In this document: positions 1 through 31,975 of the stretch, piece after piece
Layout of the letters: the number at the start of each line of letters is the position of its first letter
How positions within the stretch are numbered: position 1 is the stretch's first letter
Assembly: GCA_028826165.1 (NCBI GenBank)
Contig: JAPDFW010000139.1
Location: forward strand, 57,309 to 121,308
Length of the DNA: 64,000 bases
From: Anaeramoeba ignava BMAN
Taxonomy: Eukaryota; Protista; Anaeramoebae
Direction of reading: 5' to 3'
Notes under the pieces: generated by a model
Seen by the model: only the letters and a program-made list of their open reading frames with translations
What the model was told of the DNA's origin: nothing
Database searches by the model: none
Program-made: the position numbers and the translations under genes

Positions 1-3000
1 TTTGCTTCGTGAAGCTGGACTCTTGATTTGGGAGTTAATGATGTTATTGAAATATCTTCCAATTTAAGCGATTTGGTTTTTGGTTTTGATTTCTGGATTT
101 GTTCTTTCAGTTCTGAACTTTCCAATTCAAGTTTTTGGATTTTTTCTTTTAATTCTTGAACTTTTTTGTCTCTTCCAAAAAATGTTCTCACTCTCTTTTT
201 TTCTTCTTGTTTTTTTTGAAGTTGTGCTTTTTGTGTAATTTCTTGTAATATTTGTTTCTTCTCATTAATTTTCTGTTTTAAAATACTAACTGAATCCAAA
301 TGGCTTTTGTTTTTATTTTCCAAATTTTTCTTCAATGTATCAATTTCAAAGTTTTTTGAGTTGATTTTTTCTTTTAATTCTTCAATTTTTTTGATTTGAT
401 TTTTTCTGTTTTTAATATTAGATTCTAAGCTTTGAATTTTTTTTTCCAAGTTTTCTTTTTCAGTGAGTTCTCTTGCTTGTTTTGATTCAAGTAACTGTGT
501 TACTTTTTGTTTTTTTGATTGAATAAGTTGATTATCATTAATTAAATTTTGGAGATATTCTTGAAGTTCCAAAATTTGTGAATTGTCTTCTAATTGTTTT
601 GTTTGTTGTGGAATTTCAATTTTTTGAATATAATCTGTTGGAACAATTCCTTCTTTTCCTTCTTGATTTTTAACGTGTGTCCATTCTCCCATATCTTTAA
701 CTTTATAAACAATTTCTCCTTCATTTACATTTAATTCTTCAGGATTTTCTGCAATAAAAGAATATAATAATTTGTATTGTTCTTGTTTAACTTCAATTTT
801 GGTTTCAATTATATCTTTGGGTTTTTCTTGAATTTCTTTAATTTCAATTTTTTGAATATAATTTGTTGGAACAATTCCTTCTTTTCCTTCTTTATTTTTA
901 ACGTGTGTCCATTCTCCTTGATCTTCAACTTTATAAACAATTTCTCCTTCATTTACATTTAATTCTTCAGGATTTTCTGCAATAAAAGAATATAATAATT
1001 TGTATTGTTCTTCTTTAACTTCAATTTTGGTTTCAATTATATCTTTGGGTTTTTCTTTAATTATATCTTTGGATTTTTCTTGAATTATATCTTTGGATTT
1101 TTCTTCAATTATTTCTTTTGGTTTTTCTTCAATTATATCTTTAGGTTTTGGAGGAAGTTGAATATCTTTAGGTTTTGGAGGAAGTTGAATATCTTTGGGT
1201 TTTGGAGGAAGTTGAATATCTTTAGGTTTTGGAGGAAGTTGAATATCTTTAGGTTTTGGAGGAAGTTGAATATCTTTAGGTTTTGGAGGAAGTTGAATAT
1301 CTTTTGGTTTTGGAGGAAGTTGAATATCTTTAGGTTTTGGAGGAAGTTGAATATCTTTGGGTTTTGGAGGAAGTTGAATATCTTTTGGTTTTTCTTTAAT
1401 TATATCTTTAGGTTTTTCTTGAATTATATCTTTTGGTTTTTCTTCAATTATTTCTTTTGATTTTTCTTCAATTATTTCTTTTGATTTTTCTTCAATTATA
1501 TCTTTTGGTTTTTCTTTAATTTCTTTAATTTCAATTTTTTGAATATAATCTGTTGGAACAATTCCTTGTTTTCCTTCTTGGTTTCTAACAAGTGTCCATT
1601 CTTCCATATCTTTAATTTTATAAACAATTTCTCCTTCATTTACATTTAATTCTTCAGGATTTTCAGCAATAAAAGAATATAATAATTTATATTGTTCTTC
1701 TTTAACTTCAATTTTGGTTTCAATTATATCTTTGGGTTTTTCTTGGAGTTCTTGAATTTCAATTTTTTGAATATAATTTGTTGGAACAATTCCTTCTTTT
1801 CCTTCTTTGTTTCTAACAAGTGTCCATTCTTCCATATCTTTAATTTTATAAACAATTTCTCCTTCATTTGCATTTAATTCTTCAGGATTTTCAGCAATAA
1901 AAGAATATAATAATTCGTATTGTTCTTCTTTAACTTCAATTTTGGTTTCAATTATATCTTTGGGTTTTTCTTCAATTATTTCTTTTGGCTTTTCTTCAAC
2001 TTCTTGAATTATATCTTTGGATTTTTCTTCAATTATATCTTTGGGTTTTTCTTGAACTTCTTGAATTTCTTGAATTTCAATTTTTTGAATATAATCTGTT
2101 GGAACAATTCCTTGTTTTCCTTCTTGGTTTCTAACAAGTGTCCATTCTTCCATATCTTTAACTTTATAAACAATTTCTCCTTCATTTGCATTTAATTCTT
2201 CAGGATTTTCAGCAATAAAAGAATATAATAATTCGTATTGTTCTTCTTTAACTTCAATTTTGGTTTCAATTATATCTTTGGGTTTTTCTTCAATAATTTC
2301 TTTTGGTTTTTCTTCAATTATTTCTTTTGGTTTTTCTTCAATTATTTCTTTTGGTTTTTCTTTAATTATTTCTTTTGGTTTTTCTTTAATTATTTCTTTT
2401 GGCTTTTCTTCAATTATATCCTTTGGTTTTTCTTTAATTATTTCTTTTGGTTTTTCTTTAATAATTTCTTTGGGTTTTTCTTCAACTTCTTGAATTATAT
2501 CTTTTGGTTTTTCTTTAATTATTTCTTTTGGTTTTTCTTCAATTATTTCTTTTGGTTTTTCTTCAATTATATCTTTTGGCTTTTCTTCAATTATTTCTTT
2601 TGGTTTTTCTTTAACTATTTCTTTTGGTTTTTCTTTAACTATTTCTTTTGGTTTTTCTTTAATTATTTCTTTTGGCTTTTCTTCAATTATATCTTTTGGT
2701 TTTTCTTTAATTATTTCTTTTGGTTTTTCTTTAATAATTTCTTTGGGTTTTTCTTCAACTTCTTGAATTATATCTTTGGGTTTTTCTTCAATTATTTCTT
2801 TTGGCTTTTCTTCAATTATATCTTTTGGTTTTTCTTCAATTATATCTTTTGGTTTTTCTTTAACTATTTCTTTTGATTTTTCTTCAATTATATCTTTTGG
2901 CTTTTCTTCAATAATTTCTTTTGGTTTTTCTTCAACTATTTCTTTTGGCTTTTCTTTAATTATTTCTTTTGGTTTTTCTTTAATTATTTCTTTTGGTTTT

Positions 3001-6000
3001 TCTTTAATTATTTCTTTTGGTTTTTCTTTAATTATTTCTTTTGGTTTTTCTTTAATTATTTCTTTTGGTTTTTCTTCAATTATTTCTTTTGGTTTTTCTT
3101 CAATTATTTCTTTTGGTTTTTCTTCAATTATATCTTTTGGCTTTTCTTCAACTTCTTGAATTTCTTTAATTTCAATTTTTTGAATATAATCTGTTGGAAC
3201 AATTCCTTCTTTTCCTTCTTTGTTTCTAACAAGTGTCCATTCTTCTTGATCTTCAATTTTATAAACAATTTCTCCTTCATTTGCATTTAATTCTTCAGGA
3301 TTTTCAGCAATAAAAGAAAATAATAATTTATATTACTTTGGTTCAATTATATCTTTGGGTTTTTCTTGAATTTCTTTAATTTCAATTTTTTGAATATAAT
3401 CTGTTGGAACAATTCCTTCTTTTCCTTCTTTGTTTCTAACAAGTGTCCATTCTTCTTGATCTTCAATTTTATAAACAATTTCTCCTTCATTTGCATTTAA
3501 TTCTTCAGGATTTTCAGCAATAAAAGAAAATAATAATTTATATTGTTCTTCTTTAACTTCAATTTTGGTTTCAATTATATCTTTGGGTTTTTCTTCAATT
3601 TCTTGAATTTCAATTTTTTGAATATAATCTGTTGGAACAATTCCTTGTTTTCCTTCTTGATTTCTAACAAGTGTCCATTCTTCTTGATCTTCAATTTTAT
3701 AAACAATTTCTCCTTCATTTGCATTTAATTCTTCAGGATTTTCAGCAATAAAAGAAAATAATAATTTATATTGTTCTTCTTTAACTTCAATTTTGGTTTC
3801 AATTATTTCTTTTGGTTTTTCTTCAATTTCTTGAATTTCAATTTTTTGAATATAATCTGTTGGAACAATTCCTTGTTTTCCTTCTTGATTTCTAACAAGT
3901 GTCCATTCTTCCATATCTTTAATTTTATAAACAATTTCTCCTTCATTTGCATTTAACCTAATTTTGGTTTCAATTATTTCTTTTGGTTTTTCTTCAATTT
4001 CTTGAATTTCAATTTTTTGAATATAATCTGTTGGAACAATTCCTTGTTTTCCTTCTTGATTTCTAACAAGTGTCCATTCTTCCATATCTTTAATTTTATA
4101 AACAATTTCTCCTTCATTTGCATTTAATTCTTCTTCACTTTCAGCAATAAAAGAATATAATAATTTATATTGTTCTTCTTTAACTTCAATTTTGGTTTCA
4201 ATTATATCTTTGGATTTTTCTTTAATTATATCTTTGGGTTTTTCTTCAATTATATCTTTGGGTTTTTCTTTAATTATATCTTTTGGTTTTTCTTCAATTA
4301 TTTCTTTTGGTTTTTCTTCAATTATATCTTTTGGTTTTTCTTTAATAATTTCTTTTGGTTTTTCTTGAATTATTTCTTTTGGTTTTTCTTCAATTATTTC
4401 TTTTGGTTTTTCTTCAATTATATCTTTTGGCTTTTCTTCAATTATTTCTTTTGGTTTTTCTTTAATAATTTCTTTGGGTTTTTCTTCAACTTCTTGAATT
4501 ATATCTTTTGGTTTTTCTTCAATTATTTCTTTTGGCTTTTCTTCAACTTCTTGAATTTCTTGAATTTCAATTTTTTGAATATAATCTGTTGGAACAATTC
4601 CTTGTTTTCCTTCTTTGTTTCTAACAAGTGTCCATTCTTCCATATCTTTAATTTTATAAACAATTTCTCCTTCATTTGCATTTAATTCTTCAGGATTTTC
4701 TGCAATAAAAGAATATAATAATTTATATTGTTCTTCTTTAACTTCAATTTTGGTTTCAATTATATCTTTTGGTTTTTCTTCAATTATTTCTTTTGGTTTT
4801 TCTTCAATTATTTCTTTTGGTTTTTCTTTAATTACTTCTTTTGGTTTTTCTTCAATTATTTCTTTTGGTTTTTCTTTAATTATTTCTTTTGGTTTTTCTT
4901 CAATTATTTCTTTTGGTTTTTCTTCAATTATATCTTTTGGCTTTTCTTCAACTTCTTGAATTTCTTGAATTTCAATTTTTTGAATATAATCTGTTGGAAC
5001 AATTCCTTCTTTTCCTTCTTGATTTCTAACAAGTGTCCATTCTTCTTGATCTTCAATTTTATAAACAATTTCTCCTTCATTTACATTTAATTCCTCTTCA
5101 CTTTCTGCAATAAAAGAAAATAATAATTTATATTGTTCTTCTTTAACTTCAATTTTGGTTTCAATTATATCTTTTGGTTTTTCTTCAATTATATCTTTGG
5201 GTTTTTCTTTAATAATTTCTTTGGGTTTTTCTTCAATTATTTCTTTTGGTTTTTCTTCAATTATTTCTTTTGGTTTTTCTTTAATTATTTCTTTAGGTTT
5301 TTCTTCAATTATTTCTTTTGGTTTTTCTTCAACTTCTTGAATTTCTTTAATTTCAATTTTTTGAATATAATCTGTTGGAACAATTCCTTGTTTTCCTTCT
5401 TTGTTTCTAACAAGTGTCCATTCTTCTTGATCTTCAATTTTATAAACAATTTCTCCTTCGTTTGCATTTAATTCTTCTTCACTTTCAGCAATAAAAGAAA
5501 ATAATAATTTATATTGTTCTTCTTTAACTTCAATTTTGGTTTCAATTATATCTTTGGGTTTTTCTTCAATTATATCTTTGGGTTTTTCTTTAATTATATC
5601 TTTTGGTTTTTCTTCAATTATTTCTTTTGGTTTTTCTTCAATTATTTCTTTTGGTTTTTCTTCAATTATTTCTTTTGGTTTTTCTTCAACTTCTTGAATT
5701 TCTTTAATTTCAATTTTTTGAATATAATCTGTTGGAACAATTCCTTCTTTTCCTTCTTGATTTCTAACAAGTGTCCATTCTTCTTGATCTTCAATTTTAT
5801 AAACAATTTCTCCTTCATTTGCATTTAATTCTTCTTCACTTTCAGCAATAAAAGAAAATAATAATTTATATTGTTCTTCTTTAACTTCAATTTTGGTTTC
5901 AATTATATCTTTGGGTTTTTCTTCAATTATTTCTTTTGGTTTTTCTTCAATTATATCTTTGGGTTTTTCTTTAATTATTTCTTTTGGTTTTTCTTTAATA

Positions 6001-8724
6001 ATTTCTTTAGGTTTTTCTTTAATTATTTCTTTTGGTTTTGGAGGAAGTTCTTGAATTTCAATTTTTTGAATATAATCTGTTGGAACAATTCCTTCTTTTC
6101 CTTCTTGATTTCTAACAAGTGCCCATTCTCCCATATCTTTAACTTTATAAACAATTTCTCCTTCATTTGCATTTAATTCTTCTTTAGCTTCAGCGATAAA
6201 AGTGTATAATAATTTATATTGTTCTTCTTTAACTTCAATTTTGGTTTGAATTATATCTTTGGGTTTTTCTTTAATTATTTCTTTGGGTTTTTCTTCAACT
6301 TCTTTAATTTCTTGAATTTCTTTAATTTCAATTTTTTGAATATAATCTGTTGGAACAATTCCTTCTTTTCCTTCTTGGTTTCTAACAAGTGTCCATTCTT
6401 CTTGATCTTCAATTTTATAAACAATTTCTCCTTCATTTGCATTTAATTCTTCTTCACTTTCAGCAATAAAAGAAAATAATAATTTATATTGTTCTTCTTT
6501 AACTTCAATTTTGGTTTCAATTATATCTTTGGGTTTTTCTTCAATTATATCTTTTGGTTTTGGAGGAAGTTGAATATCTTTTGGTTTTGGAGGAAGTTGA
6601 ATATCTTTTGGTTTTGGAGGAAGTTGAATATCTTTTGGTTTTGGAGGAAGTTGAATATCTTTTGGTTTTGGAGGAAGTTGAATATCTTTAGGTTTTGGAG
6701 GAAGTTGAATATCTTTAGGTTTTGGAGGAAGTTGAATATCTTTAGGTTTTTCTTCAATAATTTCTTCAGGTTTTTCTTCAATTATTTCTTTTGGTTTTTC
6801 TTCAATTATATCTTTAGGTTTTTCTTTAACTATTTCTTTTGGTTTTTCTTTAATAATTTCTTTAGGTTTTTCTTTAATTATTTCTTTTGGTTTTTCTTTA
6901 ATTATTTCTTTTGGTTTTTCTTTAATTATATCTTTTGGTTTTTCTTTAATTATATCTTTTGGCTTTTCTTTAATTATATCTTTTGGTTTTGGAGGAAGTT
7001 CTTGAATTTCAATTTTTTGAATATAATCTGTTGGAACAATTCCTTGTTTTCCTTCTTCATTTCTAACAAGTGCCCATTCTCCCATATCTTCAACTTTATA
7101 AACAATTTCTCCTTCATTTGCATTTAATTCTTCTTTAGCTTCAGCGATAAAAGTGTATAATAATTTATATTGTTCTTCTTTAACTTCAATTTTGGTTTGA
7201 ATTATATCTTTGGGTTTTTCTTTAATTATTTCTTTTGGTTTTTCTTCAACTTCTTTAATTTCTTGAATTTCTTTAATTTCAATTTTTTGAATATAATCTG
7301 TTGGAACAATTCCTTCTTTTCCTTCTTGGTTTCTAACAAGTGTCCATTCTCCCATATCTTCAACTTTATAAACAATTTCTCCTTCATTTACATTTAATTC
7401 TTCAGGATTTTCTGCAATAAAAGTGTATAATAATTGATACTTGTCTTTTTCATTTATGATTTTTTGAATATATTCTGTTGGAACAATTCCTTGTTTTCCT
7501 TCTTTGTTTTTAACAAGTGTCCATTCTCCCATATCTTCAACTTTATAAACAATTTCTCCTTCATTTGCATTTAATTCTTCTTTAGCTTCAGCAATAAAAG
7601 AAAATAATAATTTGTATTGTTCTAGTTTAACTTTAACTTCTTTATTTTCTTGAATTTCAATTTTTTGAATATAATCTGTTGGAACAATTCCTTCTTTTCC
7701 TTCTTGATTTCTAACAAGTGTCCATTCTTCCATATCTTTAATTTTATAAACAATTTCTCCTTCATTTGCATTTAATTCTTCTTCAGTTTCAGCAATAAAA
7801 GAAAATAATAATTTATATTGTTCTAGTTCAACTTGGATTACTGATTGTTGGTTATTATCGGAAATATTTTGAGATTTTTCGAATTGCAAATAGTCGAAAG
7901 GAACTAATCCTTCTTGGGCTTTTTTTAATAATAAATTCAATAATAATTTTAATAATTTTAATAATATTTTTAATATTTTTAATAATTTTTAATTTTAATA
8001 TTATTTTTAATAATTTTAATTTTAATAATATTTTTAATAATTTTAATTTAAAAATACCATCTTTTTGGATAATTGCCCAATCTCCGGTTCTCTGCTTAAA
8101 ATAAACAACATCTCCTTGATTAACAGTTACTTCATTAGATGATTCGGCAATAAAATCGAAAAGAATCAAAACTTTTTCCAAGTTATTATTTAATTGTAAC
8201 TTTTTTTTCTTTCCATCATCTTTTACTTTTGATTCGAAATCAGTAAGATCAAAATCAGAAATTAAGTTCATAATCTCAAGAAATTTGGAGTTAAAATATT
8301 GGTCATCAAGAGGTTTTGCCTTTTGAACCGCAATAAAGGAAATAGGGACAGGAATTTTTGAATGATTTGATTGATCCAATAATTTAACGACATAATTATT
8401 GGGTTTTTTTTCAATAATGACAACTTTTTCTTGTGGTTTTAAAGTAACTTTTGGACTGATAACTGTTTCTTGAATAATTTGGCCTTGATCGTGTAAAGAA
8501 AGAAGAAGCTTATTGGCTTGAAAATAGATTGGCTTTAATGTTGACAGTTTCAGTTGAGCTTGTTTTTTTTCTAAAATAACTCGTGCAAGTTGTTCTTTGT
8601 TGTTTTGATACATTTGTTCAATTTTTTTCACTGCTTTTAATTCACTTCGAAGTTTGTTTATTTTATTGCGTAGTAACTTGGTTGTTGGTGAAATTTTGTT
8701 GATTTGTGTTTCTAAAATTGACAT
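1..8724 (-). CDS. Giant multi-SH3 repeat protein (~21 SH3 domains, K/E/P/I-rich linkers, N- and C-terminal coiled coils); runs off the window start
   Basis: ATG at 8724 (MSILETQ). Exon 1 8724-8058, phase-1 GT-AG intron 8057-7919, joining to QKDA-QEGLVPFDYL. Repeated SH3 signature YKLL[FY]SFIAE..EEL.[AV]NEGEIV...EW.LV....GK.GIVPTDYIQ. An in-frame TAA at 3335-3333 interrupts it, but the same frame resumes with 6 more SH3s and a coiled-coil tail to position 1. Confidence 0.9.
1135..1385 (-). repeat. 27-bp coding tandem repeat (DIQLPPKPK) x9
   Basis: ggttttggaggaagttgaatatcttt unit repeated on + strand; translates to QLPPKPK on - strand. Confidence 0.9.
6548..6745 (-). repeat. 27-bp coding tandem repeat (DIQLPPKPK) x7
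   Basis: Visible in ORF 3333..7940 translation. Confidence 0.9.
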
Positions 8725-8893
8725 TTGGAAAGGATAAAATAAAATGATTAAAAATGAATAATAAAAAAATGAAAAAAAAAACAAGAAAAATTTTTTTTTG
8801 CTTTTTTATTTTTTTTTTTTATTTTTTTTTCATTTTTTTTTCCTTCTAAATTTATAAAAAAAAAATTTATAAAAAAAAAAAAGATTTATAAAA

Positions 8894-10207: not shown

Positions 10208-13200
10208 ATGCAAGATTCTCCTCAATTTTTCGATACTTTAATTAATTTAATAAATTTAAAAAAAAAGGATTCACTTGAAGATTTTTTAAAAAAAATTAAT
10301 CCAAATGAATTAAATCGAGTAATAAAATAAAATAATTTGAAAAATAATTTAAATAATTCTTATTTTTTTTTCTTTATTAAAATTAGCATTATGAATATTT
10401 TCATCAAGCTTGTCTTTCAAATTCAATTGAAATTATTGAAACTCTTCTTAAATATGGAGCAAATTTAAATATAACAAGTGTAAAAAAGAATAAAAATAAG
10501 AATAATTTTAATTATAAAAATTTTGATAAAAAAAACCATTTTTAGCCAGTAATTTATTTACAAATTTATTTATAAATTTATTTACAAATTTTTAATATTT
10601 TTTAAATTTATTTATAATATAAATTTATTTACAAATTTATTTTACAAATTTATTTTACAAATTTATTTTACAAATTTATTTTACAAATTTATTTACAAAT
10701 TTTTATTTACAAATTTACAAATTTATTTTACAAATTTATTTACAAATTTATTTTTACAAATTTATTTACAAATTTATTTTACAAATTTATTTTTACAAAT
10801 TTATTTACAAATTTATTTATAAATTTTATTTATAAATTTATTTTACAAATTTATTTTATAATTTATTTATTTATTTTACAAATTTTGTTTTATTTATTTT
10901 TTATTTTTATAAATTTATTTTATAAATTTATTTATATATTTATTTACAAATTTATTTTTTACAAATTTATTTACAAATTTATTTTGGTTAAATTTATTTT
11001 TATAAATTTATTTACAAATTTATTTATAAATTTATTTATTTACAAATTTATTTTACAAATTTATTTATAAATTTATTTATTTTACAAATTTATTTAAAAT
11101 ATTTATAAATTTATTTTAATTATTTATAAATTTTATAAATTTATTTACAAATTTATTTTTTATAAATTTATTTATAAATTTTTGTTGTTTTTTATATTTA
11201 TTTATAAATTTATTTTTATAAATTTATTTTATTTAAATTTATTTACAAATTTATTTTACAAATTTATTTATTTACAAATTTATTTATATATATTTATTTT
11301 ATATATTTATTTTATAAATTTATTGTTTTTAAATTTGTTTTTAGTTGTTTAAATTTATTTTATAAATTTATTTATATTTTTTATTTATAAATTTATTTTA
11401 TAAATTTATTTTATTTTTACAAATTTATTTTTATAAATTTATTTTATTTATTTTATGTTTTTTAAATATTTATTTAAATTTATTTTATTATTATTTATTT
11501 TTACAAATTTATTTTACAAATTTATTTTACAAATTTATTTATTTATAAATTTATTTTAAATATTTATTTTTATTACAGGTTTTACAAATTTATTTTATAC
11601 AAATTTATAAATTTTTTTACAAATTTAACATATTTATTTTTATTTATTTATTTTTTTATTTATTTTACAAATTTATTTTGTTAAATTTATTTTTTATTTA
11701 AATTAAATTATTTATGTAAATTTATTTTTATATTTTTTACAAATTTTTATAAATTTATTTACAAATTTATTTTATATTTATTTATTTATAAATTTATTTT
11801 ACAAATTTATTTACAAATTTATTTATATATTTATTTATAAATTTATTTTAATAAATATTTATTTATGTTGTTTTATTTTTTACAAATTTATTTTACAAAT
11901 TTATTTACAAATTTATTTATTTATAAATTTATTTTATAAATTTATTTATAAATTCTATTTACAAATTTATTTTACATGTTATTTTATATTTATTTATAAA
12001 TTTATTTTTACAAATTTATTTTACAAATTTATTTTTACAAATTTATTTTTACAAATTTTATTTATTTATATTTTATTTTACAAATTTATTTTATGTTTAT
12101 TTTATTTACAAATTTATTTTTAAATATTTATTTATATATTTATTTACAAATTTATTTTAAATATTTATAAATTTATTTTATAAATTTATTTTTTTACAAA
12201 TTTATTTTAAATTTATTTTATATTTATATATAAATTTATTTTAAAATATTTAAATATTTATAAATTTATTTTTTAAATATTTATATTTATTTAATTTATA
12301 AATTTAATTTTATAAATATTTTTATAAATTTATAAATTTTATTTACATATTTATTTACAAATTTATTTTAAATATTTATTTACAAATTTATTTTACAAAT
12401 TTATTACATTTTTATTTACAATTTTTTATTTTATAAATTTATTTATTTACAAATTTATTTTATTAATTTATTTACATTTATTTATTTATTTAATTTATTT
12501 TATAAATTTATTTTATTTATTTTTTATAAATTTATTTTATAAATTTATTTATAAAAATTTTTACAAATTTACAAATTTATTTACAAAATTTATTTACAAA
12601 TTTATTTTTACAAATTTATTTTAAATATTTATTAATTTATTTACATAAATTTATTTATAAATTTATTTATAAATTTATTTATAAATTTATTTATTTAATT
12701 ATTTATAAATTTATTTAAATATTTATAAATTTATTTAAATATTTATAAATTTATTTAAATTATTTATAAATTTATTTAAATATTTATAAATTTATTTAAT
12801 TATTTATAAATTTAGTCTGTAAAATTTTTATTAAATTTTTTCAACTTGAAATATTTAAAATATAAAATAAATATTATTATTTAAAAAGGGAGCAACACCT
12901 CTTTTTCAATCTTGTTGGTATAATTGCTCTCCAAATGTTATTGATTTACTTTTAAAAAATAATGCACAACCAAATATAGAAACTGTAAAAAAAGAAAAAG
13001 AAAAAGAGAAAGATTTGAAAAAGAAAATCTAATAAAGAAAAATTTTTTTAGAATGTAAATTTAATTCGTTATTTATATTTAAAATTTTAAATATTTATAT
13101 TTATTTTTTAAAAAAAAAAGACTGTAAAACTTAATTTGAAAAAAAAATTTTTTTTGAATTGATTTGATTGTAATTGAAATAAAAAATTTTTTTAATAATT

Positions 13201-14827
13201 TTGAATTAGCTTGATACGCCAATTCATGCAGCTTGCCTTGGATTGTATCCTGAGGTTGTTCTTAAATTAATAGAAGCAGGATGCGAAATTGAGAAAAGAA
13301 ATGTAATTTAATTTTATAATATTTTTTTTATAATATATTTTTTATAATATTTTTTTTATAGATTGTAAATTTGAATCAAAATACATTTTGTTTTTGGATT
13401 ATATTAAATTCATTTAAAATTATAGCAAGTAAAAATTTAAAAATTTAAAAATTATAATTTATATTAAAAATTAAAAAAATTTTTTTTCTTCATGATTTTT
13501 ACAAGAATTGCACACCAATTCATTATGCATCATTTTTCTGTAATTTCGATGCATTAAAAATATTGATAGAACATGAAGCAGATGTTAATTCATTGGGTGT
13601 AAAAATAAAAATCAAAATCAAAATCAAAACAATTTAAATTTAGATTTGAATTTCAAAAAAAAAATGCATTTTTTTAATATATAATCTTGAAAGACAGTAC
13701 GTAAATTTATTATAAATTTAAAAATTACATATGAATTATTATTAAATTTTCTATTAATTTTTTTTAAAAAAGGGAGTAAGAAATTTGAAAGAAAGAAATG
13801 GAAATTATTTTTTTTATTTAAAAAATGAATTGATACAAAAATAGGGAAATTTAGCACTTCATTTTGTATCTTCACAAGTTGAATTAAATGATTTAAATTC
13901 TTTAAAGTGTGTTTATTTATTAATAAAATCTGGAGCAGATTTTTTATCAAAAAATGTAAAAAGAGAAAAAGAGAATTAAATTTGTTTTAAATTTTTTACA
14001 TTTGAATAAAAAATAGCAAGTAAATTTTTAAATTATTTTTGAATTATTTTTGAATATTAATTGAATTTGAATTTTAGAATGGATTGCTTCCATTTGATGA
14101 AATTCGTGATCCAAAAATCAAGCTTAGATTAAATGATTACATATCGATTGGCTATGATTTTTATGATCTTTTAACACAAAATTTATTTGATTATGAAATA
14201 CGAAATATTCATCAAGAAACAATCAAATTTCATGAAAACTTAGTAAGAACAAGAGTAGGAAACCAGAACAATTTCAACACGCTTATAAAGTTACTTAAAA
14301 ACATGACGCAAGAAGAAGCGCGAAGCATTCTGAAGTTTCTTTATTGCGGAATACTTGAATCACGAGCAAAAGAAAAATTGCAAGGAGTGCATTTTGAGTC
14401 GGATTGGATCAAGAAAGGACGGGGAAGAAAGGGGTTATTGAGGACACTTGAGCAGTTATATCAGCATGAGGAAAGTAAAGATTTTGTGATTATTGCGCAG
14501 GATGTTCCTATTAGGGTTCATAGGTTTGTATTGATTGCGCGAACAGGACTTTATCGTCAAATGTTTGGATCAGTTGAAAAAGAAGAAAAATCAGTCTCAG
14601 ACTATTCGGGTCGTTCTCCACAAGCTTTTCAGGCTCTTATAGAGTATTTTTATACTGATAAAATTTCTAATAATTTCCCTCTTTCTATTGTAGATGAACT
14701 TTCTGATGCTTGTGATTTTTTTCAGTTGTCAAATGAAAGAAGATTTAATGAATGTTTGCATGGAATTGAAGAAAGTGCTATTTTTAATTCTGATGTTAAA
14801 AGAAGGAGATCTTATAAGAAAGATTAA
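10208..14827 (+). CDS. Ankyrin-repeat + BTB/POZ protein (~457 aa), 16 exons including nine 3-nt microexons
   Basis: Large exons 10208-10318, 10387-10479, 12889-12984, 13210-13302, 13506-13598, 13845-13955, 14078-14827; all introns phase 0 and GT-AG. Ankyrin motifs GATPLFQSC, LDTPIHAAC, NCTPIHYAS, GNLALHF, LLKYGANLN, EHEADVN. C-terminal BTB (KDFVIIAQDVPIRVHRFVLIART...AFQALIEYFYTD) preceded by a degenerate BTB. Confidence 0.88.
10546..10548 (+). other. 3-nt microexon CCA (Pro)
   Basis: tttag|CCA|gtaatt, 66 nt after donor at 10480. Confidence 0.8.
10551..12813. repeat. Degenerate ~12-13 bp minisatellite (ACAAATTTATTT / ATAAATTTATTT) filling the 2267-nt intron between microexons 1 and 2
   Basis: Direct inspection. 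Confidence 0.9.
12816..12818 (+). other. 3-nt microexon TCT (Ser)
   Basis: tttag|TCT|gtaaaa, followed by a 70-nt intron. Confidence 0.8.
13052..13054 (+). other. 3-nt microexon AAT (Asn)
   Basis: tttag|AAT|gtaaat. Confidence 0.8.
13121..13123 (+). other. 3-nt microexon ACT (Thr)
   Basis: aaaag|ACT|gtaaaa. Confidence 0.78.
13362..13364 (+). other. 3-nt microexon ATT (Ile)
   Basis: tatag|ATT|gtaaat. Confidence 0.8.
13426..13428 (+). other. 3-nt microexon CAA (Gln)
   Basis: tatag|CAA|gtaaaa. Confidence 0.8.
13694..13700 (+). other. 3-nt microexon, either TAC (Tyr, 13698-13700) or ACA (Thr, 13694-13696)
   Basis: aaagacagtacgtaaat contains both aag|ACA|gtacgt and cag|TAC|gtaaat. Confidence 0.72.
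13773..13775 (+). other. 3-nt microexon GGA (Gly)
   Basis: aaaag|GGA|gtaaga. Confidence 0.8.
14017..14019 (+). other. 3-nt microexon CAA (Gln)
   Basis: aatag|CAA|gtaaat; the next exon starts AAT GGA, supplying the second loop residue. Confidence 0.8.
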
Positions 14828-15010
14828 AATTAAGATTAAAATTAAAATTAAAATTAAAATTAAAATTAAAAATCAAAAAAGTGGAACAAAATATTTTTAT
14901 CAATTTTTATCAATTTTTTCAAAAGGAAAAAATAAAATTAATTTTTAAATTGTTTTAAATTGTTTTTAAATTGTTTTTAAATTGTTTTAAATTGTTTTTA
15001 AATCGTTATT

Positions 15011-18000
15011 TCACCAATAAGGACACCAACCAATATAACACTGACAAAGATTCTTGTGAGAAGTGGCTTGATCAATAAGACGTTGAACTTGATTAGAAGA
15101 TTGCATAACATGACTTGGATCGAAATCTCTACCAGAAAGTTTATTGGAAATTCTTGTGACAACTTGAAGAGCAGTTTCATTAAGAACCTCATTAGAATAA
15201 GGAAGAGAAGTAAGAGAAAGAAGAGGATCATCAGGGGTATTTTTTGGATTAAGGGGAGTCTTTAAGGATTTTGAATTAGGATTTGCATTGTGGTTTCCGA
15301 CAAGCTTCCAAGAAAAGAGGGGATCGTAAACAAAGGCCTCAAGCATAGCCATGAGAGAGTCCTTGTTTGTGCGGAGAATCTCCATGACACGAGTGGATGT
15401 CTCAGTGAATGTCCCATCTACTCCGCAGATCTCCATTGCGTTGACAAGCATTCGGGTCAAACGGAAAGGAATTGTTTCGGGAAAATGTTTTCGATGCATT
15501 GCAACCTCGAAACAGTCGCCGAAGTCGATATGGACAATCTTGCCTGAGGATCTGTCCATCATGATATTGGAAGGGTGGCGATCGCCAAGGCCGAGAATAT
15601 ACCCGACCATCGACATGACAGCCAGAGAGCGAGTGTAAGTTGTCCTCTTGTCAAGCCACACTTCTGTGTTTTGTGATTTCAGCCAAAGAACCCGTTGGAT
15701 GTCGATTCCGTCCGTTTGTGATAGGACGTTGTTGAAGATCTCAAGCTTGCGAGAAAGAGGCATGATGTCGTAGTTCTGTGTCAGTTGAAGAATCATGCGA
15801 TGCTCGAGATTCAGGACAATTCCGAAACTTGCACGGTATTCTCGGATTAGATCATACAGCGTGTCGCAGAAAGGCACCCATCCGATCAGTCCAGTATTCG
15901 GCGAGAGTGGCACAACAGCATAACGCTCAATGTGGAGACGCAGCTTTGCAGTGTGTATATCGCCAAGTAGCAAAGAGTTGATCAGCCCAAAAAGCTGCAT
16001 TGCGCGCTCGTCTTGTCTCAGGTCTTCGTGACCCTTCAGAAGAAACGAGAACACGGATCCATCCGAACCGTGGATATGGAGCTTGCGCGGGCGCTGCTTG
16101 GTTTTCAAGATGGTCAAGTTAGGGGAAATACTGTCGATGTAGATGATCGGTGATCCAGACTTGTAAGTGCCGGGAACAGAAAGTTCCAAATTTTTTGCCT
16201 GACTTGATTGGGGGGATACATTTGATAGTTCTAATTTTGCCATTTGGGGAATTTCGTTTTCGAGACGTTTGAATATACGGACATAGGATTTCCAAGCAGC
16301 AACAAAACAAGAATCAAGATGGGTCAACATGTACTGTTCAGAATTTTGACGTGCGTTTTGGAGATCTGCTCGATATGCCTCGACAAACTCCTGCTCGCTC
16401 TTTGTCTCAGGTCCGCGCATCATCAGCTTGTGCATCTGGTCGAGTGCAACGACTATTTCGGGATAGTTCTTTGTGGGGAAGTACTGCCGAGAAACCTCTT
16501 CAATCGCCTCGTGCCAAAGCTCTTTCCATAAAATAGCAATGCGAATAAGCTCAGAACTCACCATCCGCGTGTCTTCCACAAGCACGGGAGAGTGACTGCG
16601 AATCATTTCCATGATCTCCTTTGCAATGTTCTCGGGCCGATTCTTTTCGTGATGGATTCGATCTGCTCTTCGTGTTGGGATCTGGCGATGATTTATTTGA
16701 TCTGTTGTGAATGATGATCTTTTCTTCGTTTTTCGAGAGTCCTTTTGCAGTTGTCGTTTTTTATCGCTCTCTCTTCCCCTCAATGAGGATCGGCCCCGCG
16801 TATTTACGCTCTTTGTGCTTTGTTGTCGATGATCGTCCGCTTGGTCGTTTTTATTGCTTTTATTGCTTTTGTTGCTTTTGTTGGGTGCCCGGTAGCCAAT
16901 GATGTTTCGTGGTGGCGAGTTTGAATTTTCTGATGTGAATAACGGTGAGGAATCACTTTCGAATTGGGTTTTTTTTGGGAAATTTTGCGGTCTAGAATCA
17001 TTGGCAAAATCTTGTGTTTTGGATCTAAAATTAAACGGTTGGATGATTTGATTTGGGGGACTATTCTGTTCATTTTCACCGAGCATTGAGGAAGTATCAG
17101 AAGACAAAGAAGATGTGTTTTCAAAGGAGGAGCTGAATGTAGCGAGGGATTCCGAGTCGAGATATGCGGAGTTTGAGTTTGATTGGAAGTCTGGGTCGCT
17201 GAGGGAAGTGTGAGCATTATGGGAGAAAACCGGACCAAGTGGATCCAAAGCGCTTGGCGAACCGTGATGAAATGTAGCGTTGATTGCCTGGCACTTCTCA
17301 GAAACAATCAGTGGATACACGAGTGCTTGAGGATGAGCCTTTCCGATCTCGTTCAGAAGATGTCTGATGAGGTTCTTGACAAGATCAGACGGTGTTGTGA
17401 TTCGCGCGATGATCTGCGGGATTACCTGAAGCCAGATGTCTATAGAAACCGTGTCGAAGCCTGTCCGCATTGCTGCATTCACCTCCTTCAACGAGCCATG
17501 ACGAAACCACAGTGTCAAAATTCGCAGGGTGTCCCGAATAATCTTCCGTGATGAGCTTAGCGATATTGCTCGGAAAAATCCTGTTATTGCTGGTATTAAG
17601 TGCTTCCGGGTTTGTCCTGTTTCTAGTCTTCCTTCTTTCTGCATGATTTCTGAAACCGTCTCGAAATTCATTAGTGCCCAGAAATGCCATGCTCGTGCCC
17701 ATTTTGGTGCGTATTTTGTGGCGTAATAGAAGGAGCTTAAGATTTCCATTTTGGAAGAATTTTCTGGGTTTCTTTGTTGATCATGTGAGTCTTCTTGGAT
17801 TTCCAGATTCCACATTCCAAATGACAGAAATGCCTTTGCCTTAAGTTTGTTTGGATCGAAGTCGAACTTCATTTTTGAGGTTAGTAGGATATCCATGAAT
17901 TCTGAGATGAATTTTTTGAGTTTTGCTAGTGCCGATTCTCTTTTGTTGCAAGCCCATAAGTGTGTTAGGTATTTGAAATAAGCGCGTGGGTGTGTTTGAA

Positions 18001-21000
18001 GGAAGATTGTTTCCTCCATTTCTTTGCCAAGAGGGTCTTTTTGGTTTGATGTTGTGAATTTTCTTTGTATGAATGGGGATGATTTTACTATTTTAAAATA
18101 TATTGAATATAATTGAATTTTAAATATATTGAATTTAATTAAATTTTAAATATATTGAATTTAATTAAATATTATGAATTTAATTGAATATTATGAATAT
18201 AATTAAATATTTTGAATTTAATTGAATATTATGAATTTAATTGAATATTTTGAATATTTTGGATTTAATTGAATATAATTGAATATTTTGAATTTAATTA
18301 AATTTAAATAAATATTTTGAATTTAATTGAATATAATTAAATATTTTAAATTTAATTGAATTTAATGAATTTAATTGAATATATTGAATATTATGAATTT
18401 AATTAAATATTTTTGAATTTAATTAAATATTTTGAATTTAATTAAATAATGAATTTAATTGAATTTAATTAAATTTAATTAAATATTATGAAATATAATT
18501 GAATTTAATTTTGAATTTAAATTGAATTTATTTAAATATTTTGAATTTAATTAAATATTTTGAATTTAATTGAATATTTTGAATATAATTAAATATATTG
18601 AATTTAATTAAATATTTTGAATTTAATTAAATATTTTTGAATTTAATTAAATATTATGTGGGAATTTAATTAAATATTATGAATTTAATTGAATTTAATT
18701 GAATTTATTTGAATTTAATTGAATTTAATTGAATTTAATTGAATATATTGAATTTAATTGAATTTTTGAATTTAATTAAATATTTTTGAATATTTTTGAA
18801 TTTAATTAAATATTTTTTGAATTTAATTGAATTTTAATTGAATTTAATTAAATATTTTGAATTTTTAATTAAATATTTTTAAATTTAATTGAATTTAATT
18901 GAATTTAATTGAATTTAATTAAATATTTTGGATTTAATTAAATACTATTGAATTTAACGAATTGAATTTAATTAAATAAATTTTTGAATATAATTTGAAT
19001 TTAAATTGAATATATTGAATTTAATTAAATATTTTGAATATAATTGAATTTAATTAAATATTTTGAATTTAATTGAATTTAATTAAATATTTTGAATTTA
19101 ATTGAATTTAATTGAATATAATTGAATTTAATTGAATATATTGAATTTAATTGAATATTTTGAATTTAATTAAATATAATTAAATATTTTGAATTTAATT
19201 GAATATTATGAATTTAATTGAATATTATGAATTTAATTAAATATATCGAATTCAATTAAATATTTTGAATTTAATTGAATATTTTGAATTTAATTAAATA
19301 TTATGAATTTAATTAAATATTATGAATTTAATTGAATATTTTGAATTTAATTAAATATTTTGAATTTAATTGAATTTAAATGAATTTAGTTACCCTTCAA
19401 ATCATAAACCTCATTTTGACCAGACTTATTATCAATAAAATCATCTCCAGAAAATTCCCTCTTATTATTCCCAGAAATATCAACTAAAAAACTACGAATT
19501 GTCTGAGAAGCAAGAGTATGATTGCCATTTTTATCACACATATTGACAAATCTGAGCCACAAAGAAGCACTTTCCTCACGAGAAAAAACAAGGGAATGAA
19601 CAAGCATGATCTTGAGCCAAACATCAGTAGAAGGCTCAGCACCTTTGAGCCTATTCTTCCAAGTTTTCTTAATAAGCTCTCGAGATTCTGAAGGTGAATA
19701 GTGATCCACAATAGGAAAATCATTTGCGCAGGTGTTTGCCGAATTGGCAAGAACATGAGACTGCGCGAGATAGAGAACCTCCTCAAGCTCGGAGACTTGG
19801 TGCGCTTTCACAATCTCAGGATAGACTGAGCGGTACTCAGCAGGCCCAAGCGCTGAAATGGAATCCACAATACTTTGGCGAGAAGTGACCAATCTGAGCC
19901 CAGCTTCCTCAAGATCACCGTTGTGGAGAGCAAGAACCGCGCGAAGAAATGTACCTTCCCAGGACTTCTCTGATATTTTGTTTGTGTGGAATTGCATCTT
20001 TCTCCAGTCGCCGATGATCCAAGCAGCATTGGCAGAAATTTCTGCAATGACCGAAGTTGAATCTTGATCCGCAATTTTGCACGCTTCCTCAGAAAGCTCA
20101 AGTAGGGTGTGCCATTTCCCAAGCGAGAACAAACATCTCATTTGGCCAAGAATGTCTGGGAGACTTTCGGGTTTGCGCACCCGTCTTTGTGTATAAATGC
20201 GCAGGGCATCCTCCCATTGGTTGAGCTCTTCGAACCATCTCTGTTTTGGATTGGGAGCTGAGATTCTTTTCTCGCCAAAGCGTATCACTCCGCGAATAGT
20301 GTCGCGCTGTTGAAGTTTACTGGCAACTGAGATGACAGAGTCGATCATCTCGAACCACCGCGGATCGTTCAGATGTCGCGAAAGCTCAAGCTCCTTGTAC
20401 CGCAACGCCTTTGCATATGCGCTGCATCTTTCTGCCGCATTTCCGAGAATCCGGACATCAAGTCCAAACACAACGCCTGCGTGGCTCATGAAGTCATCCA
20501 ACCCGAGAATCATTTGTTGGATCTCAACCGGTACTGTTGTCAAATTTCGCATAACGGACTCAATGTTTCTTATAAGATCACGTTTATGTTCGTCCGGCAA
20601 ATAGGTAAATACTCTTAAAAAAGCAACTTCGAAAAGTGTTTTCTCGATCGATGTTGCTGTTCCAAGAAGCATTTCGCAGGATCGCAAAGAGACTGATGGC
20701 GAGTGTCTGAGAAGTTCTGAAGAAAACCGTTTCATCCATTCTCGCCAGTCGTCCTCTGTCTCGCATCCTCTTGTGTTCCAAAACTTTGCAATATGCTCTG
20801 CTTGAAACGATTGGGGGGTTTTTTGGGCTGAATGAGAAACAACGTCAAGTAACCGACGTGATCTTGATCTTTTCCTCATTCTTTTTTTCAACAGCGTTAG
20901 CGATGGGAGCTGCTCGCCGGTTTCAATTGCGCGCGAAACCTCTTCGTAGAGAACATGCGTGACATCGCCGAGTATTCTATATCTGCGCAGAGTCTCGCCA

Positions 21001-24000
21001 ACAACGGGAAGGAAAACGCGGTAGCGATGACCCAACTGAACCGCCAATTGGGTCATTGTGTCCAGTACTGATTTTCTGAGAACATTACTAGGGGTCTCGA
21101 GAACACGGATCAACGCCTGCATAATCCGTGAGCTTTGGTCTGTCAGGTTTGTGGAGGCGCAGAGCTTCCCCAGCGTTTTAACCGCTTCAACCCTAAGACT
21201 CTCTTGAGTCTCCCGATCTTCCGCAAGATCAAGCATAGCAGGCACAACAAGTGGCAAGTAGTCGCAGAGCTTATCCCCCAGAAGTCTTAAGCAGTGCATC
21301 ACTTCCTGCGTCTCAAATGTTCTAAGCTTGTTGATTGCCGCTACAAGTCTGGGAACAAGTGTTGGCATGTATGTCTTGATCTGATCAGGGAAAATCTCTG
21401 CTATTTCCTCAATAAGCCCAACAATCTGAGGGATCGCAAACGGGATCCAGTTCGCAAAAAGAAACCGCATAATCGACGCGATGTGGATCTTCATGTTCTG
21501 TTTGATCGAGCTGACAAGAAGACTCATCTTCTCGAAAATAAACTGAACAGAAACCGAACTGCATATTTGCATGTGTTGAAAAAACGGTCGAAGAATCCGT
21601 TTCAAAAAAACAGCAGAAGGATCAGCAAAGTTGTGCACGATAAGAACAAATGCTTGAATCGCGAGTCGGTGGTGTTGTCGCAGTGCCCGATCCTCCAAAA
21701 TCCTCATTAACGTTGATGTTGCTGCATTCGCAAAAAATTCTTCTTGGCTCATCCGCTCAGGATTCATGAAATATTCAGCTATTCCAGACACCACTTCCCG
21801 TCGGTTCATCCTTTTCTCCTCGTCTTCGTCTTGATCCCCGTCTTCGTTCTCTTCTTGTCCCTTCCCTTGCTGGTAATAGAATTGTTCATACTGTGGGTCA
21901 GTGTGCTGATCTCTTCCTCCATAAGATTCCGTGAACGTGTTTTCTCCTCTCCGTCGACGCGTTAATGGCCGCACCCCTGAACTAAGCATCACACGCGAAT
22001 CCGACCGTTGCAATGAGATGTCGCTCTGTGTATCCCGGGTTCTTGTGGAAAGTGTTGCTGTATGTTGCGAATTATTTGTTTTTGGACTTTTAACTGAAAA
22101 TAAACTTGGTTTTGCTTCGTTAAGTTTTTCTGTCTTTGCTTCTTGATCTTCCTCGTCTTTTGATAGTGCTTTTCGGTGCTGTTCTGGATCTATTGCTCCA
22201 ATTAGTCCTATTACTCTTACTGCTTCTTGTTGGATTTGTGGATCGTTTACTGAACGAACAAATCGAAGTAATGATTGGATTAAATCTGGATATTTTTTAA
22301 ATGGTGATATTACGAATCCTGTGAATTGGACGAGTTTTCCCATTGTTTGAAGTGCAGACTTATTAATTTATTTTGATATTTTAATTTAATAATTTAATAT
22401 TTTATTTTAATATTTTAATTTAATATTTTAATATTTTAATATTTTAATATTTTAATATTTTAATATTTTAATATTTTAATATTATTATTTTAATATTTTA
22501 ATATTTAAATATTTTAATATTTTAATATTTTAATATTTAAATATTTTAATATTTTAATATTTTAATATTTTAATATTTTAATATTTTAATATTTTTATAT
22601 TTGAATATTTTATTATTTAATTATTTTATTTTATTATTTTTATATTTTGATATTTTATATAATCTACTAAACAAAATGTCGGATTTTGATCTATCATATA
22701 ATGTGCTAAAACTGGTAAAAGATCTTCTTGATATTTCCCCATTTTTTCTCCTCCAACTTCTATAATATTCCCAATAGCTGATAAAACATATGATGTAACC
22801 TCTTGGTTATCATCAGATAAATTTTCAATTTTTGAAAGAAAACTTTGCATCATTGAATCGCAATAAGGTCGAATCAATTTATTTGAATATTGAACTAAAT
22901 GAACTAACAATTCAACACTTTGATCTCGAATAATTCGACTTTGAGATATTTCAAATTCAGTTAAAAGACCCATTAATGTATTTCTTAATGTTGGAAGAAC
23001 AATAGATGGTGAAATTTCTCCAATTTTTCCGATTATTGTTATTGAAAGTTTTCGAACTTCAATATTTTCATCATTTAAGGAAAGTGAAAGAAGTTCAACA
23101 TTTTCTGGATCAAATAATTTATGATGAAATTTATCGAATAATTCTTGTAAAATTGCTAATCTATTAGAAGGGTCTTTAATTAAGAAAAAAAGTGGAATGA
23201 ATTTTAATTTTAATTTTGATTTTGATTTTGATTTTATAAATGAATTTTAATTTTAATTTAAATTTGATTTTGATTTTAATTTTAATTTTAAATTTTAATA
23301 TTAATTTTAATTTTTAATTTTTGATTTAATTTTTGATTTAATTTTTGATTTTAATTTTAAATTTAATTTTAATTTTAATTTTAATTTTTAATTTTTGATT
23401 TTCTACCTTGATCTGTGACTGCTAAAGAAATTAAAGATTGAATAATATTATAAATTGTTGGATCTGAATCAAAATTTGGAGAACTTAATAATTTAATTGA
23501 AGTTAATCCAGCTTCTCTTCTAATTTTGGAATTAGAATTCCTGAAATAAGGAACAATATTAATTTCCAAATATTCTTTTTGAACTTCTTCATCAAAAGAA
23601 AATTCTCTTAAACCTTTCAAAGCAAATAAAATTTGAGAAGACCAACTTTTTGTACTTGCCTCAATAATATCTTTCTGTGTAAGTTTTTGTCCTTTATCCA
23701 TATAATTCTTTGATGGTGTTATTAATAGATCTGTATAAATAAAATGTGGTACTTGATATTTTGTATCTGATAAAATCAACGAAAAAATATTTAGAATTCG
23801 AAATTTAAGATGAACTTTTAAATTTGAAAGTGTATTAAGTAGTTCCGAAAACACAAATATTTTTGTTTTATCGAGTCCTGTAGAAAATATGACATCTTTG
23901 ATTTTGATTTTAATTTTAAATATTTGATTTTTAATTTTAAATATTTGATTTTAATTTTGATTTTGAATATTTGATTTTAAAGATTTTAAATATTTGATTT

Positions 24001-25977
24001 TGATTTTAATTATTTGATTTTAATTTTGATTTTATTTTTAAATATTTTAATTTTGATTTTAAATATTCACTTAAAATATCTGAACGTAATAAATAAGGTT
24101 CAATATTTGTCACTTTTGATAATGTTGCTAAACAAATAAGTGAGGTTTCACAATATTTAACCTTCTGTGAAGGAATCATTGATTTTTGAATTTGACTCAT
24201 AATTTTTGGAACAAATTCTTGAATATGCTTTCCAGCAATCTTTTAATATGATATAATATATATAAAAAAATTGGGTTTTTTTATTGTTTACAATTAATAA
24301 AAGAAAGAAGAACAGTAAAAATAAACAATATTTTCTATTTAATAATATACAACAATTAAATCTGACAAAGAAGAAAATGTCTCTTTTAATAAAGAACGTC
24401 CTTGTTTCAAAGTATTAAGAAGATAATTTAATCCCTCATTAAGATAATTTGCACGAAAAAAATCTGGTGAATATTTTGCTAATAAAGGAATTATTTTCAC
24501 TAAAACTGGTCGAATCATCGAAATTTTTGATGATGTATATCGAAAAACAAGATTGCAAGCATCTTTAAAATAATTATCTAAATAATTATCTTGATTTTGA
24601 AAAATTTCACCTTTTGATTTTGATTTTGATTTTAATTTTGATTTTGATTTTAATTTTAATTTTAATTTTGATTTTGATTTTGATTTTAATTTTAATTTTA
24701 ATTTTGATTTTGATTTTGATTTTGATTTTAATTTTGATTTTAATTTTGATTTTGATTTTAATTTTAATTTTGATTTTAATTTTAATTTTAATTTTAATTT
24801 TGATTTTAATTTTGATTTTTATTTTAATTTTAATTTTAATTTTAATTTTAATTTTAATTTTTAATTTTGATTTTAATTTTGATTTTAATTTTAATTTTAA
24901 TTTTGATTTTAATTTTAAATTTTAATTTTGATTTTGATTTTAATTTTGATTTTGATTTTGATTTTAATTTTATAAATGAATTTTAATTTTGATTTTAATT
25001 TTAAATTTAAATTTTGATTTTAATTTTGATTTTAATTTTAATTTTGATTTTGATTTTGATTTTGATTTTGATTTTGATGTTTTTTTTAAAATGAATAAGC
25101 AAAATAAATTTTTAAGAACTAAAAAGAAAATCAATCAAAATTGAGAATAATTTACAAATCACTAATAAACCACCATGAACCAATTCAGGTTTGTTTAGTT
25201 GTATAGTCTAAAAATAAATAGAAAAAAAAAAGTGAAAAAATTTGTTCTCAATTAAATAAAAATTTTTCTTAATACTTTTTGAGCTTCCAAAAATAAATTT
25301 GCATAAATTTTTTTCTCTTGTTTGTTTTGCCTGATTTTAAGCAAGTTCAAACAAGCTGCCAAAGAATTAATAGCAGCCTCACGAATAGCGATTTTTGGAT
25401 CACGAAGAGGAATCCAAATCAAATCCAAAAAACGCGAACTATTCTGATAAACAACATTTGGAACAGCCTTTGAAAACTCAGAAAACACACACAAGGCAGT
25501 CATAAATTGCACTTCATTTCTTTCAGCATCTAACCATTCAAGTGCTCTTTGTATTTCAATTTCTGCCGAAGTGAGTTGCAAAGCGCCTCCAAATTTAATC
25601 AAATGACCCAAAGTTTTTGCAATTAATTGAATCAAAGCAAATCCGTTATTTGGCCGCAATAACAGAGACTTAAGATGGCTTGAAAACCGCGCAATTTTTA
25701 GTGCGCTTTCTTCTTCTTGAACATCTATTAACTTGTCGATTATTAAAACTGCTGCTATTCTTCCATTTTCGTTCGGTGAATTTATTAGTTCAATTAATTT
25801 GTTATTTAGAAGATCAATCATTAAAGTAAAATTTGTTCGGTTTAATTGTGCTCTTTCTGTTTCAATTAAACTTCGTATATCTTTTGTTAGTTTTTTCAGT
25901 TGTTCTTTGTCTTTATTGTGTATTTCATCAAACATATTCCCAAAAAATTGTTTATTTTGTGATGAATTGGAAATCAT
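15011..25977 (-). CDS. TOR: Target of rapamycin kinase (~2739 aa), 8 exons
   Basis: Exons 25977-25276, 25207-25156, 24610-24351, 24239-24071, 23895-23407, 23173-22668, 22358-19394, 18087-15011 (sum 8220 nt, phases compatible). HEAT repeats, FAT (AYAKALRYKE), FRB (ELIRIAILWKELWHEAIEEVSRQYF), PIKK kinase (LLKGHEDLRQDER, GLGDRHPSN, HIDFGDCFE), FATC (NLCQCYIGWCPYW). Confidence 0.97.
18090..19390. repeat. Intronic minisatellite GAATTTAATT / GAATTTAATTAAATATTTT in TOR intron 7
   Basis: Direct inspection. Confidence 0.9.
24613..25078. repeat. Intronic hexamer microsatellite (TTTTAA/TTTTGA)n in TOR intron 2
   Basis: Direct inspection; source of the spurious ILILIL ORF. Confidence 0.9.
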
Positions 25978-28973: not shown

Positions 28974-29129
28974 GGATTATTTTATTTATATAAAAAAAAA
29001 GGAAAAAAAAAAGGAAAATTGAAAAATGAAAAATTATTTGAAAAAAAAATTTTTTTATTTAAAATTTTTTAATCAAATGAAAGGAGAAAAATTACTCATT
29101 TTAATTAATTAATTATCAATTATTTTTAA

Positions 29130-31720: not shown

Positions 31721-31975
31721 AAGAAATATAGATGAAAATTTTTGTTTTAATTTTTTTAATTTGTGTTTTTTTTTTTGATCTTTGATCAATTAAGAAATAA
31801 AAAGAAACAAACTTAAATAAAATTAAAAACTCTTTCTAAAAAATATTTGACATAAACAAATGACAAAAATAACTGAAAAAAAAAAAAAATTTTTAAAAAA
31901 AAAAATTAAACAAACAAAAACGAAAATATTTTTTTTTCATTTTTTTTTCAATTAAAATTTTTTTTAACAAGTTGA

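Follow-up and report, generated by a model that had tools for sequence, protein, structure and literature searches.

The ankyrin-BTB gene on the forward strand at positions 10208-14827 of a 64-kb stretch of Anaeramoeba ignava DNA (the window, on contig C140 of a 42.8-Mb genome in 147 contigs) raises the question of whether single residues of a protein are encoded by separate exons of just three nucleotides (nt). A. ignava, an amoeba that lives free and anaerobically, has ~32,000 introns (mode 76 nt, 8% GC; PMC11550330). A preliminary description of this DNA had located nine units of the form AG|NNN|GT, that is, a triplet bounded by a splice acceptor and a splice donor, between the long exons of the gene, and all nine are indeed present, in phase 0 (Table 1). 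Based on a paralog's transcript, the conservation of such units in a second species and their distribution in the genome, we take the units to be real exons of 3 nt and consider it probable that every one of them is normally included and that the loops they encode evolve in the germline.

The nine units partition the gaps among the five ankyrin core exons and the BTB-bearing last exon, giving the gene 15 introns, every one of which is GT-AG and in phase 0. As the preliminary description had it, the introns are of ordinary size (58-99 nt in 14 of the 15) except for one of 2267 nt that is filled with simple repeats. Two overlapping options exist for the unit near 13696, and the splice sites (CAG acceptor, GTAAAT donor) are better for TAC at 13698-13700. 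When the long exons are joined without the units, the product is exactly the NCBI model (KAJ5066605.1, P0001; 448 amino acids, aa), so the public annotation lacks all nine, as had been suspected; adding the units brings the protein to 457 aa. Their inclusion regains the D-x-x-G spacing of the ankyrin repeat at five junctions, by two residues at four of them and by the one residue required at the last, while the first junction (10318|10387) has zero units and is one residue below consensus length. Pfam domain matches give ankyrin repeats followed by BTB, the layout of an ankyrin-BTB adaptor, and a more divergent BTB-like unit probably lies ahead of the Pfam BTB in the last exon, judging from the model of a paralog. 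Across genes, the ankyrin core exons encode 31-33 aa, are in phase 0 and carry one repeat core each. A scan of AG-GT spacings from 0 to 12 with an AT-rich-flank filter found 10 matches at spacing 3 on the sense strand of the gene (counting both overlapping options near 13696) and 0-1 at all others, and with the same filter there were no spacing-3 matches on its antisense strand. In the 59 kb of the window outside the gene, matches are no more frequent at spacing 3 (5) than at the other spacings (3-14).

That units of this kind are spliced in is demonstrated by a paralog, at locus L005. Its genome model KAJ5069692.1 (P0004) has 366 aa and the transcriptome-derived EukProt open reading frame (P0151) has 374 aa, and the two are identical apart from QE, KV, YM, and MF, which are added in the latter at four ankyrin junctions. 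The genomic locus contains eight AG-NNN-GT units encoding, in order, Q, E, K, V, Y, M, M, and F, precisely the extra residues. The match of eight out of eight establishes that splicing includes consecutive pairs of 3-nt exons in this paralog. The annotation overlooks the units here, as it does in the gene of the window. Recursive-splicing sites without an exon are rejected because the three bases remain in the transcript. A protein homology search with KAJ5066605.1 found no transcript-derived protein of the window gene itself, and one with the last exon, subject to a length filter and to the small number of words shared, gave no matches. In one sequencing run, of unspecified kind, a fraction of 0.49 of the words from 12860-14830 is present, where the long exons alone predict 0.51. 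A separate observation concerns another ankyrin-BTB gene (L022/L006, C2:482 kb), for which the EukProt open reading frame P0009, a 'complete' BTB-only protein of 221 aa, begins within the last exon of the 580-aa model, a hint that some transcript may keep the last intron.

The position of the units within the repeat is the one claimed for them, the beta-turn. They correspond to the two x residues of D-x-x-G and align to the turn positions that are varied in designed ankyrin repeat proteins (DARPins), on which the model of a paralog superposes at 1.3-1.8 Å. Two units are found in 54 of 69 clean ankyrin junctions and none in 6, the remainder having 1-10, and no stop codon occurs among 150 ankyrin units, against 13.6 predicted from the triplets of introns (P 6e-7). 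The second unit is the repeat's most variable column (3.78 bits, 17 residues), and the first (3.13 bits) is comparable to several long-exon positions (3.2-3.6 bits). DARPins are varied at six positions per repeat (PMC6977956) and the units account for two, so they cover part of the binding face. The introns around the units (median 69 nt) are very AT-rich and no conserved branch-point motif was seen in them. Their similarity is no higher than that between introns of different genes (background 0.16), so recent clonal expansion of the ankyrin repeat exons is not indicated, and because these introns are fully diverged the layout of core exon-codon-codon is old. Three is the usual number of units where the following exon begins one residue further on (L025). 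Later core-exon starts with three units per junction occur in the ankyrin genes L016, L020, and L025, together with some runs of 5-10 units and occasional 6-nt exons, and L025 runs on into RING-like and kinase exons. A 10-unit ankyrin run lies at C2:8-9 kb.

The units extend to a second species, A. flamelloides, whose orthologs have a mean identity of 37% to those of A. ignava. In KAJ3439087.1 of A. flamelloides, one junction lacks two residues and another lacks one, and these gaps are closed by the units GAA, AAT, and TAT (E, N, and Y). The units do not differ among four copies, which come from two strains, whereas chance matches in the long introns do. On these sequence comparisons the unit layout is common to both species, and one A. 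flamelloides RCC1-BTB gene has zero units. In A. pumila almost every intron has been lost. The proposal that the units make specificity residues separately evolvable or spliceable is supported in one part, in that comparison of codons across paralogs places the second unit at the top in entropy. The other part, alternative splicing and diversification faster than at other variable positions, gains no support: the one full transcript includes every unit, most junctions are fixed at two units, the four A. flamelloides copies are unchanged, and other variable repeat positions in long exons have entropy similar to that of the units.

Across the A. ignava genome, a strict search for two units in succession gives 617 matches at 3-nt spacing. 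A control at 4-nt spacing gives 64, every one within six simple or coding repeats. The reversed-pattern control for the strict search is also high (359), and it is thus the 4-nt-spacing and strand controls that carry the weight. For the latter, 196 kb of selected loci contain 392 spacing-3 matches on the coding strand versus 15 on the opposite strand, and other spacings give 10-31. These loci were mostly chosen by the pattern itself, and paralogs chosen solely through BTB homology carry the same unit pairs. A pattern of one unit gives a genome signal no larger than its control, and units of 6 or 9 nt are not in excess in the spacing counts. With 3.8 to 14 units per strict match, the genome total of such 3-nt exons is probably one to several thousand, as a rough extrapolation. 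The expansion of BTB genes is itself very large, with 1995 first-look candidates and at least 305 BTB-BACK-TLDc-like proteins in a database search.

The preliminary description saw the units in ankyrin turns, which is one part of the picture; the device is also found in BTB-BACK-TLDc genes, where runs of 7, 15, 16, 25, and 30 units in phase 1 are placed in the loop that follows the TLDc G-P-x-F-G motif. When fully read, these runs encode loops that are free of stops and abundant in Tyr, Asp, Trp, and Phe. Their motifs occur in the same order across paralogs, and 83 of 93 units have T as the middle base (codon position 3). A phase-0 reading of the runs as hydrophobic residues was tried and is wrong, the runs being in phase 1. 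Their introns are near-copies, with a mean similarity of 0.4-0.6 and values up to 1.0 versus the background of 0.16; together with those of the L011 run the range is 0.4-0.7, with maxima of 0.93-1.0. The young arrays are tandem copies of an intron plus three bases, with signs of both gain and decay, as in L011, where a few units have lost a splice site. Among the genes concerned, L012, L013, and L014 (C1:942 kb; C1:1.058-1.073 Mb) have a BTB-(BACK)-TLDc layout with 7-30-unit runs that the NCBI models skip or at which they stop. At L011 (C1:409300-413200, minus strand), more than 33 phase-0 units separated by near-identical introns of ~75 nt come after a BTB gene; the run is broken by a 1.2-kb ATT-type repeat and no clear long exon was seen downstream of it.

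We propose that the short AT-rich introns would each be recognised alone (intron definition) and removed stepwise, in which case exon size would not limit splicing. Since the unit consists of one intron and three bases, its duplication or deletion would lengthen or shorten the loop by one residue and keep the frame. Where intron copies cross over unequally or slip, single residues would be gained or lost in this way, and non-triplet units would be purged as frameshifts. The layout in the ankyrin-BTB genes is mostly fixed at two units, and unit gain would have built the long loops, 10 residues in some ankyrin genes and 7-30 in the BTB-BACK-TLDc genes, the latter recently. The outcome would be a germline repertoire of BTB substrate-receptor-like proteins that differ by paralog in loop length and sequence, rather than by shuffling in each transcript. 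BTB domains often recruit Cullin-3, and the products would likely be Cullin-3 adaptors.

Several points weigh against this proposal. The transcript support is a single full-length sequence (L005), and an assembled contig reveals the main form only. AlphaFold gives the units-skipped and units-included forms essentially the same predicted local distance difference test score (95.3 and 95.4), and inclusion is therefore not imposed by structure. The loop in more than 100 TLDc paralogs has 16-27 residues (35 in one) from one FG motif to the other, and full inclusion would give 30-45, exceeding nearly all of them, which a partially included cassette would also explain. Any advantage of the one-codon layout is one that we infer.

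The second and third of these points would fit a combinatorial mechanism in which every 3-nt exon is a cassette and skipping yields many loop variants per gene, as in Dscam or the micro-exon genes of Schistosoma, chiefly from the long TLDc and ankyrin runs. Every unit preserves the frame, the near-identical introns supply equivalent splice sites, the NCBI models use the exact skip-all junctions and only 4 of 981 TLDc skipping joins create a stop, a test of stop avoidance that is low in power. Nevertheless, we regard combinatorial splicing as unlikely. The single transcript retains all eight of its units, most junctions keep a fixed count of two and the paralogous TLDc runs keep their motifs in order. 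In addition, the skip-all TLDc loop of 15 residues is shorter than that of every other paralog, and skip-all models are to be expected from gene finders that are unable to place 3-nt exons. A broader form, in which receptors that recognise substrates, symbionts, or invaders are diversified at codon resolution by both intron-unit duplication and transcript-variable inclusion, seems to us equally doubtful.

A neutral architecture has the same mechanism of origin as that proposed here and differs from it on selection alone, the exons being real and without benefit to evolvability. Three introns would have been gained close together in one ancestral ankyrin turn, and separately in the TLDc loop, since loops tolerate introns and splicing is by intron definition, and repeat and gene duplication would then have multiplied the layout. 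This agrees with the full divergence of the ankyrin-gene introns, the static unit count, the unaltered units of A. flamelloides and its unit-free RCC1-BTB gene, the unexceptional variability of the first unit, and the fact that most TLDc paralogs appear to vary the loop without long runs. On the other hand, two domain families acquired the device, in different phases and on both occasions at the loop that varies most, the units are solely of 3 nt, and the long runs retain open, aromatic-rich loops. We rate neutrality a little lower still. That the units are chance motifs or dead relics in introns, never spliced in, we reject as very improbable. In its favour, public models skip the units and the transcript of the window gene itself was not seen, but the P0151 match refutes it for the family and the strand bias, the absence of stops and the conservation across species all oppose it.

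Exons of this size are not without parallels. Lone 3-nt microexons in RPS24 (PMC12686416), plants (PMC8831610), and a dinoflagellate (PMC12584245) are likewise spliced and commonly mis-annotated, but those are scattered and single, whereas the Anaeramoeba exons are systematic, consecutive (up to 30) and bound to one structural position. The micro-exon genes (MEGs) of Schistosoma (PMC10526429) also have runs of tiny exons, mostly multiples of three, that are overlooked by automatic annotation. However, the MEG exons are mostly of 15 bp with introns of 0.1-5 kb, in ~35 genes with documented alternative splicing, and those of Anaeramoeba are almost all of 3 nt with introns of ~69 nt. The MEG products are secreted and have little conserved fold, while the domain in which the Anaeramoeba units occupy one loop is folded and of cytosolic type; unlike a MEG, which is coded mostly by micro-exons, the window gene has 9 of its 457 codons in them and encodes a folded ankyrin-BTB protein. 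The Ectocarpus ROCO-LRR and NB-ARC-TPR genes (PMC3341825) and the Tetrahymena LRR genes with 90-bp exons (PMC6564038) are similar in having one repeat core per exon and a single intron phase, and in forming large, apparently fast-evolving families of binders in eukaryotes that are microbes or algae. Those arrays are proposed to have expanded through duplication in tandem and unequal crossing-over. They amplify whole LRR or TPR repeats, whereas in Anaeramoeba the exons are of single codons, an intron with three bases can be the unit that is amplified, and the domains are ankyrin or TLDc on BTB. The encoding of beta-turn residues is also reminiscent of DARPins and LoopDARPins (PMC6977956), the 10-unit runs resembling an enlarged turn loop, which is an analogy and not a relationship. 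The A. ignava genome paper (PMC11550330) makes no mention of microexons in its text or available supplements, and no description of the one-codon-exon layout was found in the literature searched, which left out most subscription papers. This is thus a real gene architecture, supported by the transcript of a paralog, and apparently one that has not been described so far.

Table 1. Exons of the ankyrin-BTB gene and its one enlarged intron, in window coordinates.
Feature	Position	Strand	Remark
Exon 1 (37 aa), with start codon and N-terminal cap	10208..10318	+	agrees with NCBI model
Ankyrin core exon 1, 31 aa	10387..10479	+	Ank_3, E 1.2e-6
3-nt exon, Pro	10546..10548	+	AG|NNN|GT unit
2267-nt intron, enlarged by AT-rich simple repeat, flanked by two 3-nt exons	10549..12815	+	
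3-nt exon, Ser	12816..12818	+	AG|NNN|GT unit
Ankyrin core exon 2, 32 aa	12889..12984	+	domain match
3-nt exon, Asn	13052..13054	+	AG|NNN|GT unit
3-nt exon, Thr	13121..13123	+	AG|NNN|GT unit
Ankyrin core exon 3, 31 aa	13210..13302	+	domain match
3-nt exon, Ile	13362..13364	+	AG|NNN|GT unit
3-nt exon, Gln	13426..13428	+	AG|NNN|GT unit
Ankyrin core exon 4, 31 aa	13506..13598	+	Ank, E 5.9e-6
3-nt exon, Tyr	13698..13700	+	weaker overlapping alternative: Thr, 13694-13696
3-nt exon, Gly	13773..13775	+	AG|NNN|GT unit
Ankyrin core exon 5, 37 aa	13845..13955	+	domain match
3-nt exon, Gln, lone unit; second residue lies on following exon	14017..14019	+	
Last exon: C-terminal cap, BTB region, stop	14078..14827	+	Pfam BTB, E 2.1e-15, exon residues 124-218

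Other features of the window were noticed as well, with the kinase gene, the TRIM37-like protein and the RNF213-type frames assigned by eye. A multi-exon TOR-like kinase gene (HEAT, FAT, kinase, and FATC) occupies 15011-25977 on the minus strand, and its exons are GC-rich (up to 47%) compared to 10-25% GC elsewhere in the window. Also on the minus strand are a long protein at ~600-8800 with many near-identical SH3-like modules and KPKEIIEE-type repeats between them, and a B-box, coiled-coil, and MATH-like protein that resembles TRIM37 (39925-41775). A tandem array of ~19 copies of a 141-nt AT-rich unit lies at 29091-31730, and large low-GC open frames at 54257-62417 have AAA-like motifs and an RNF213-type resemblance.

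The public protein models of these Anaeramoeba families are without their most variable residues, and other intron-rich, AT-rich genomes may hide similar arrays. A spliceosome that routinely handles consecutive 3-nt exons, up to 30 of them, bears on the minimum size of an exon and on the order in which introns are removed. For the Anaeramoeba families themselves, the arrays make visible a route by which the length of a binding loop can change by single residues and without a frameshift, with an old stage (ankyrin) and a young one (TLDc) in one genome.

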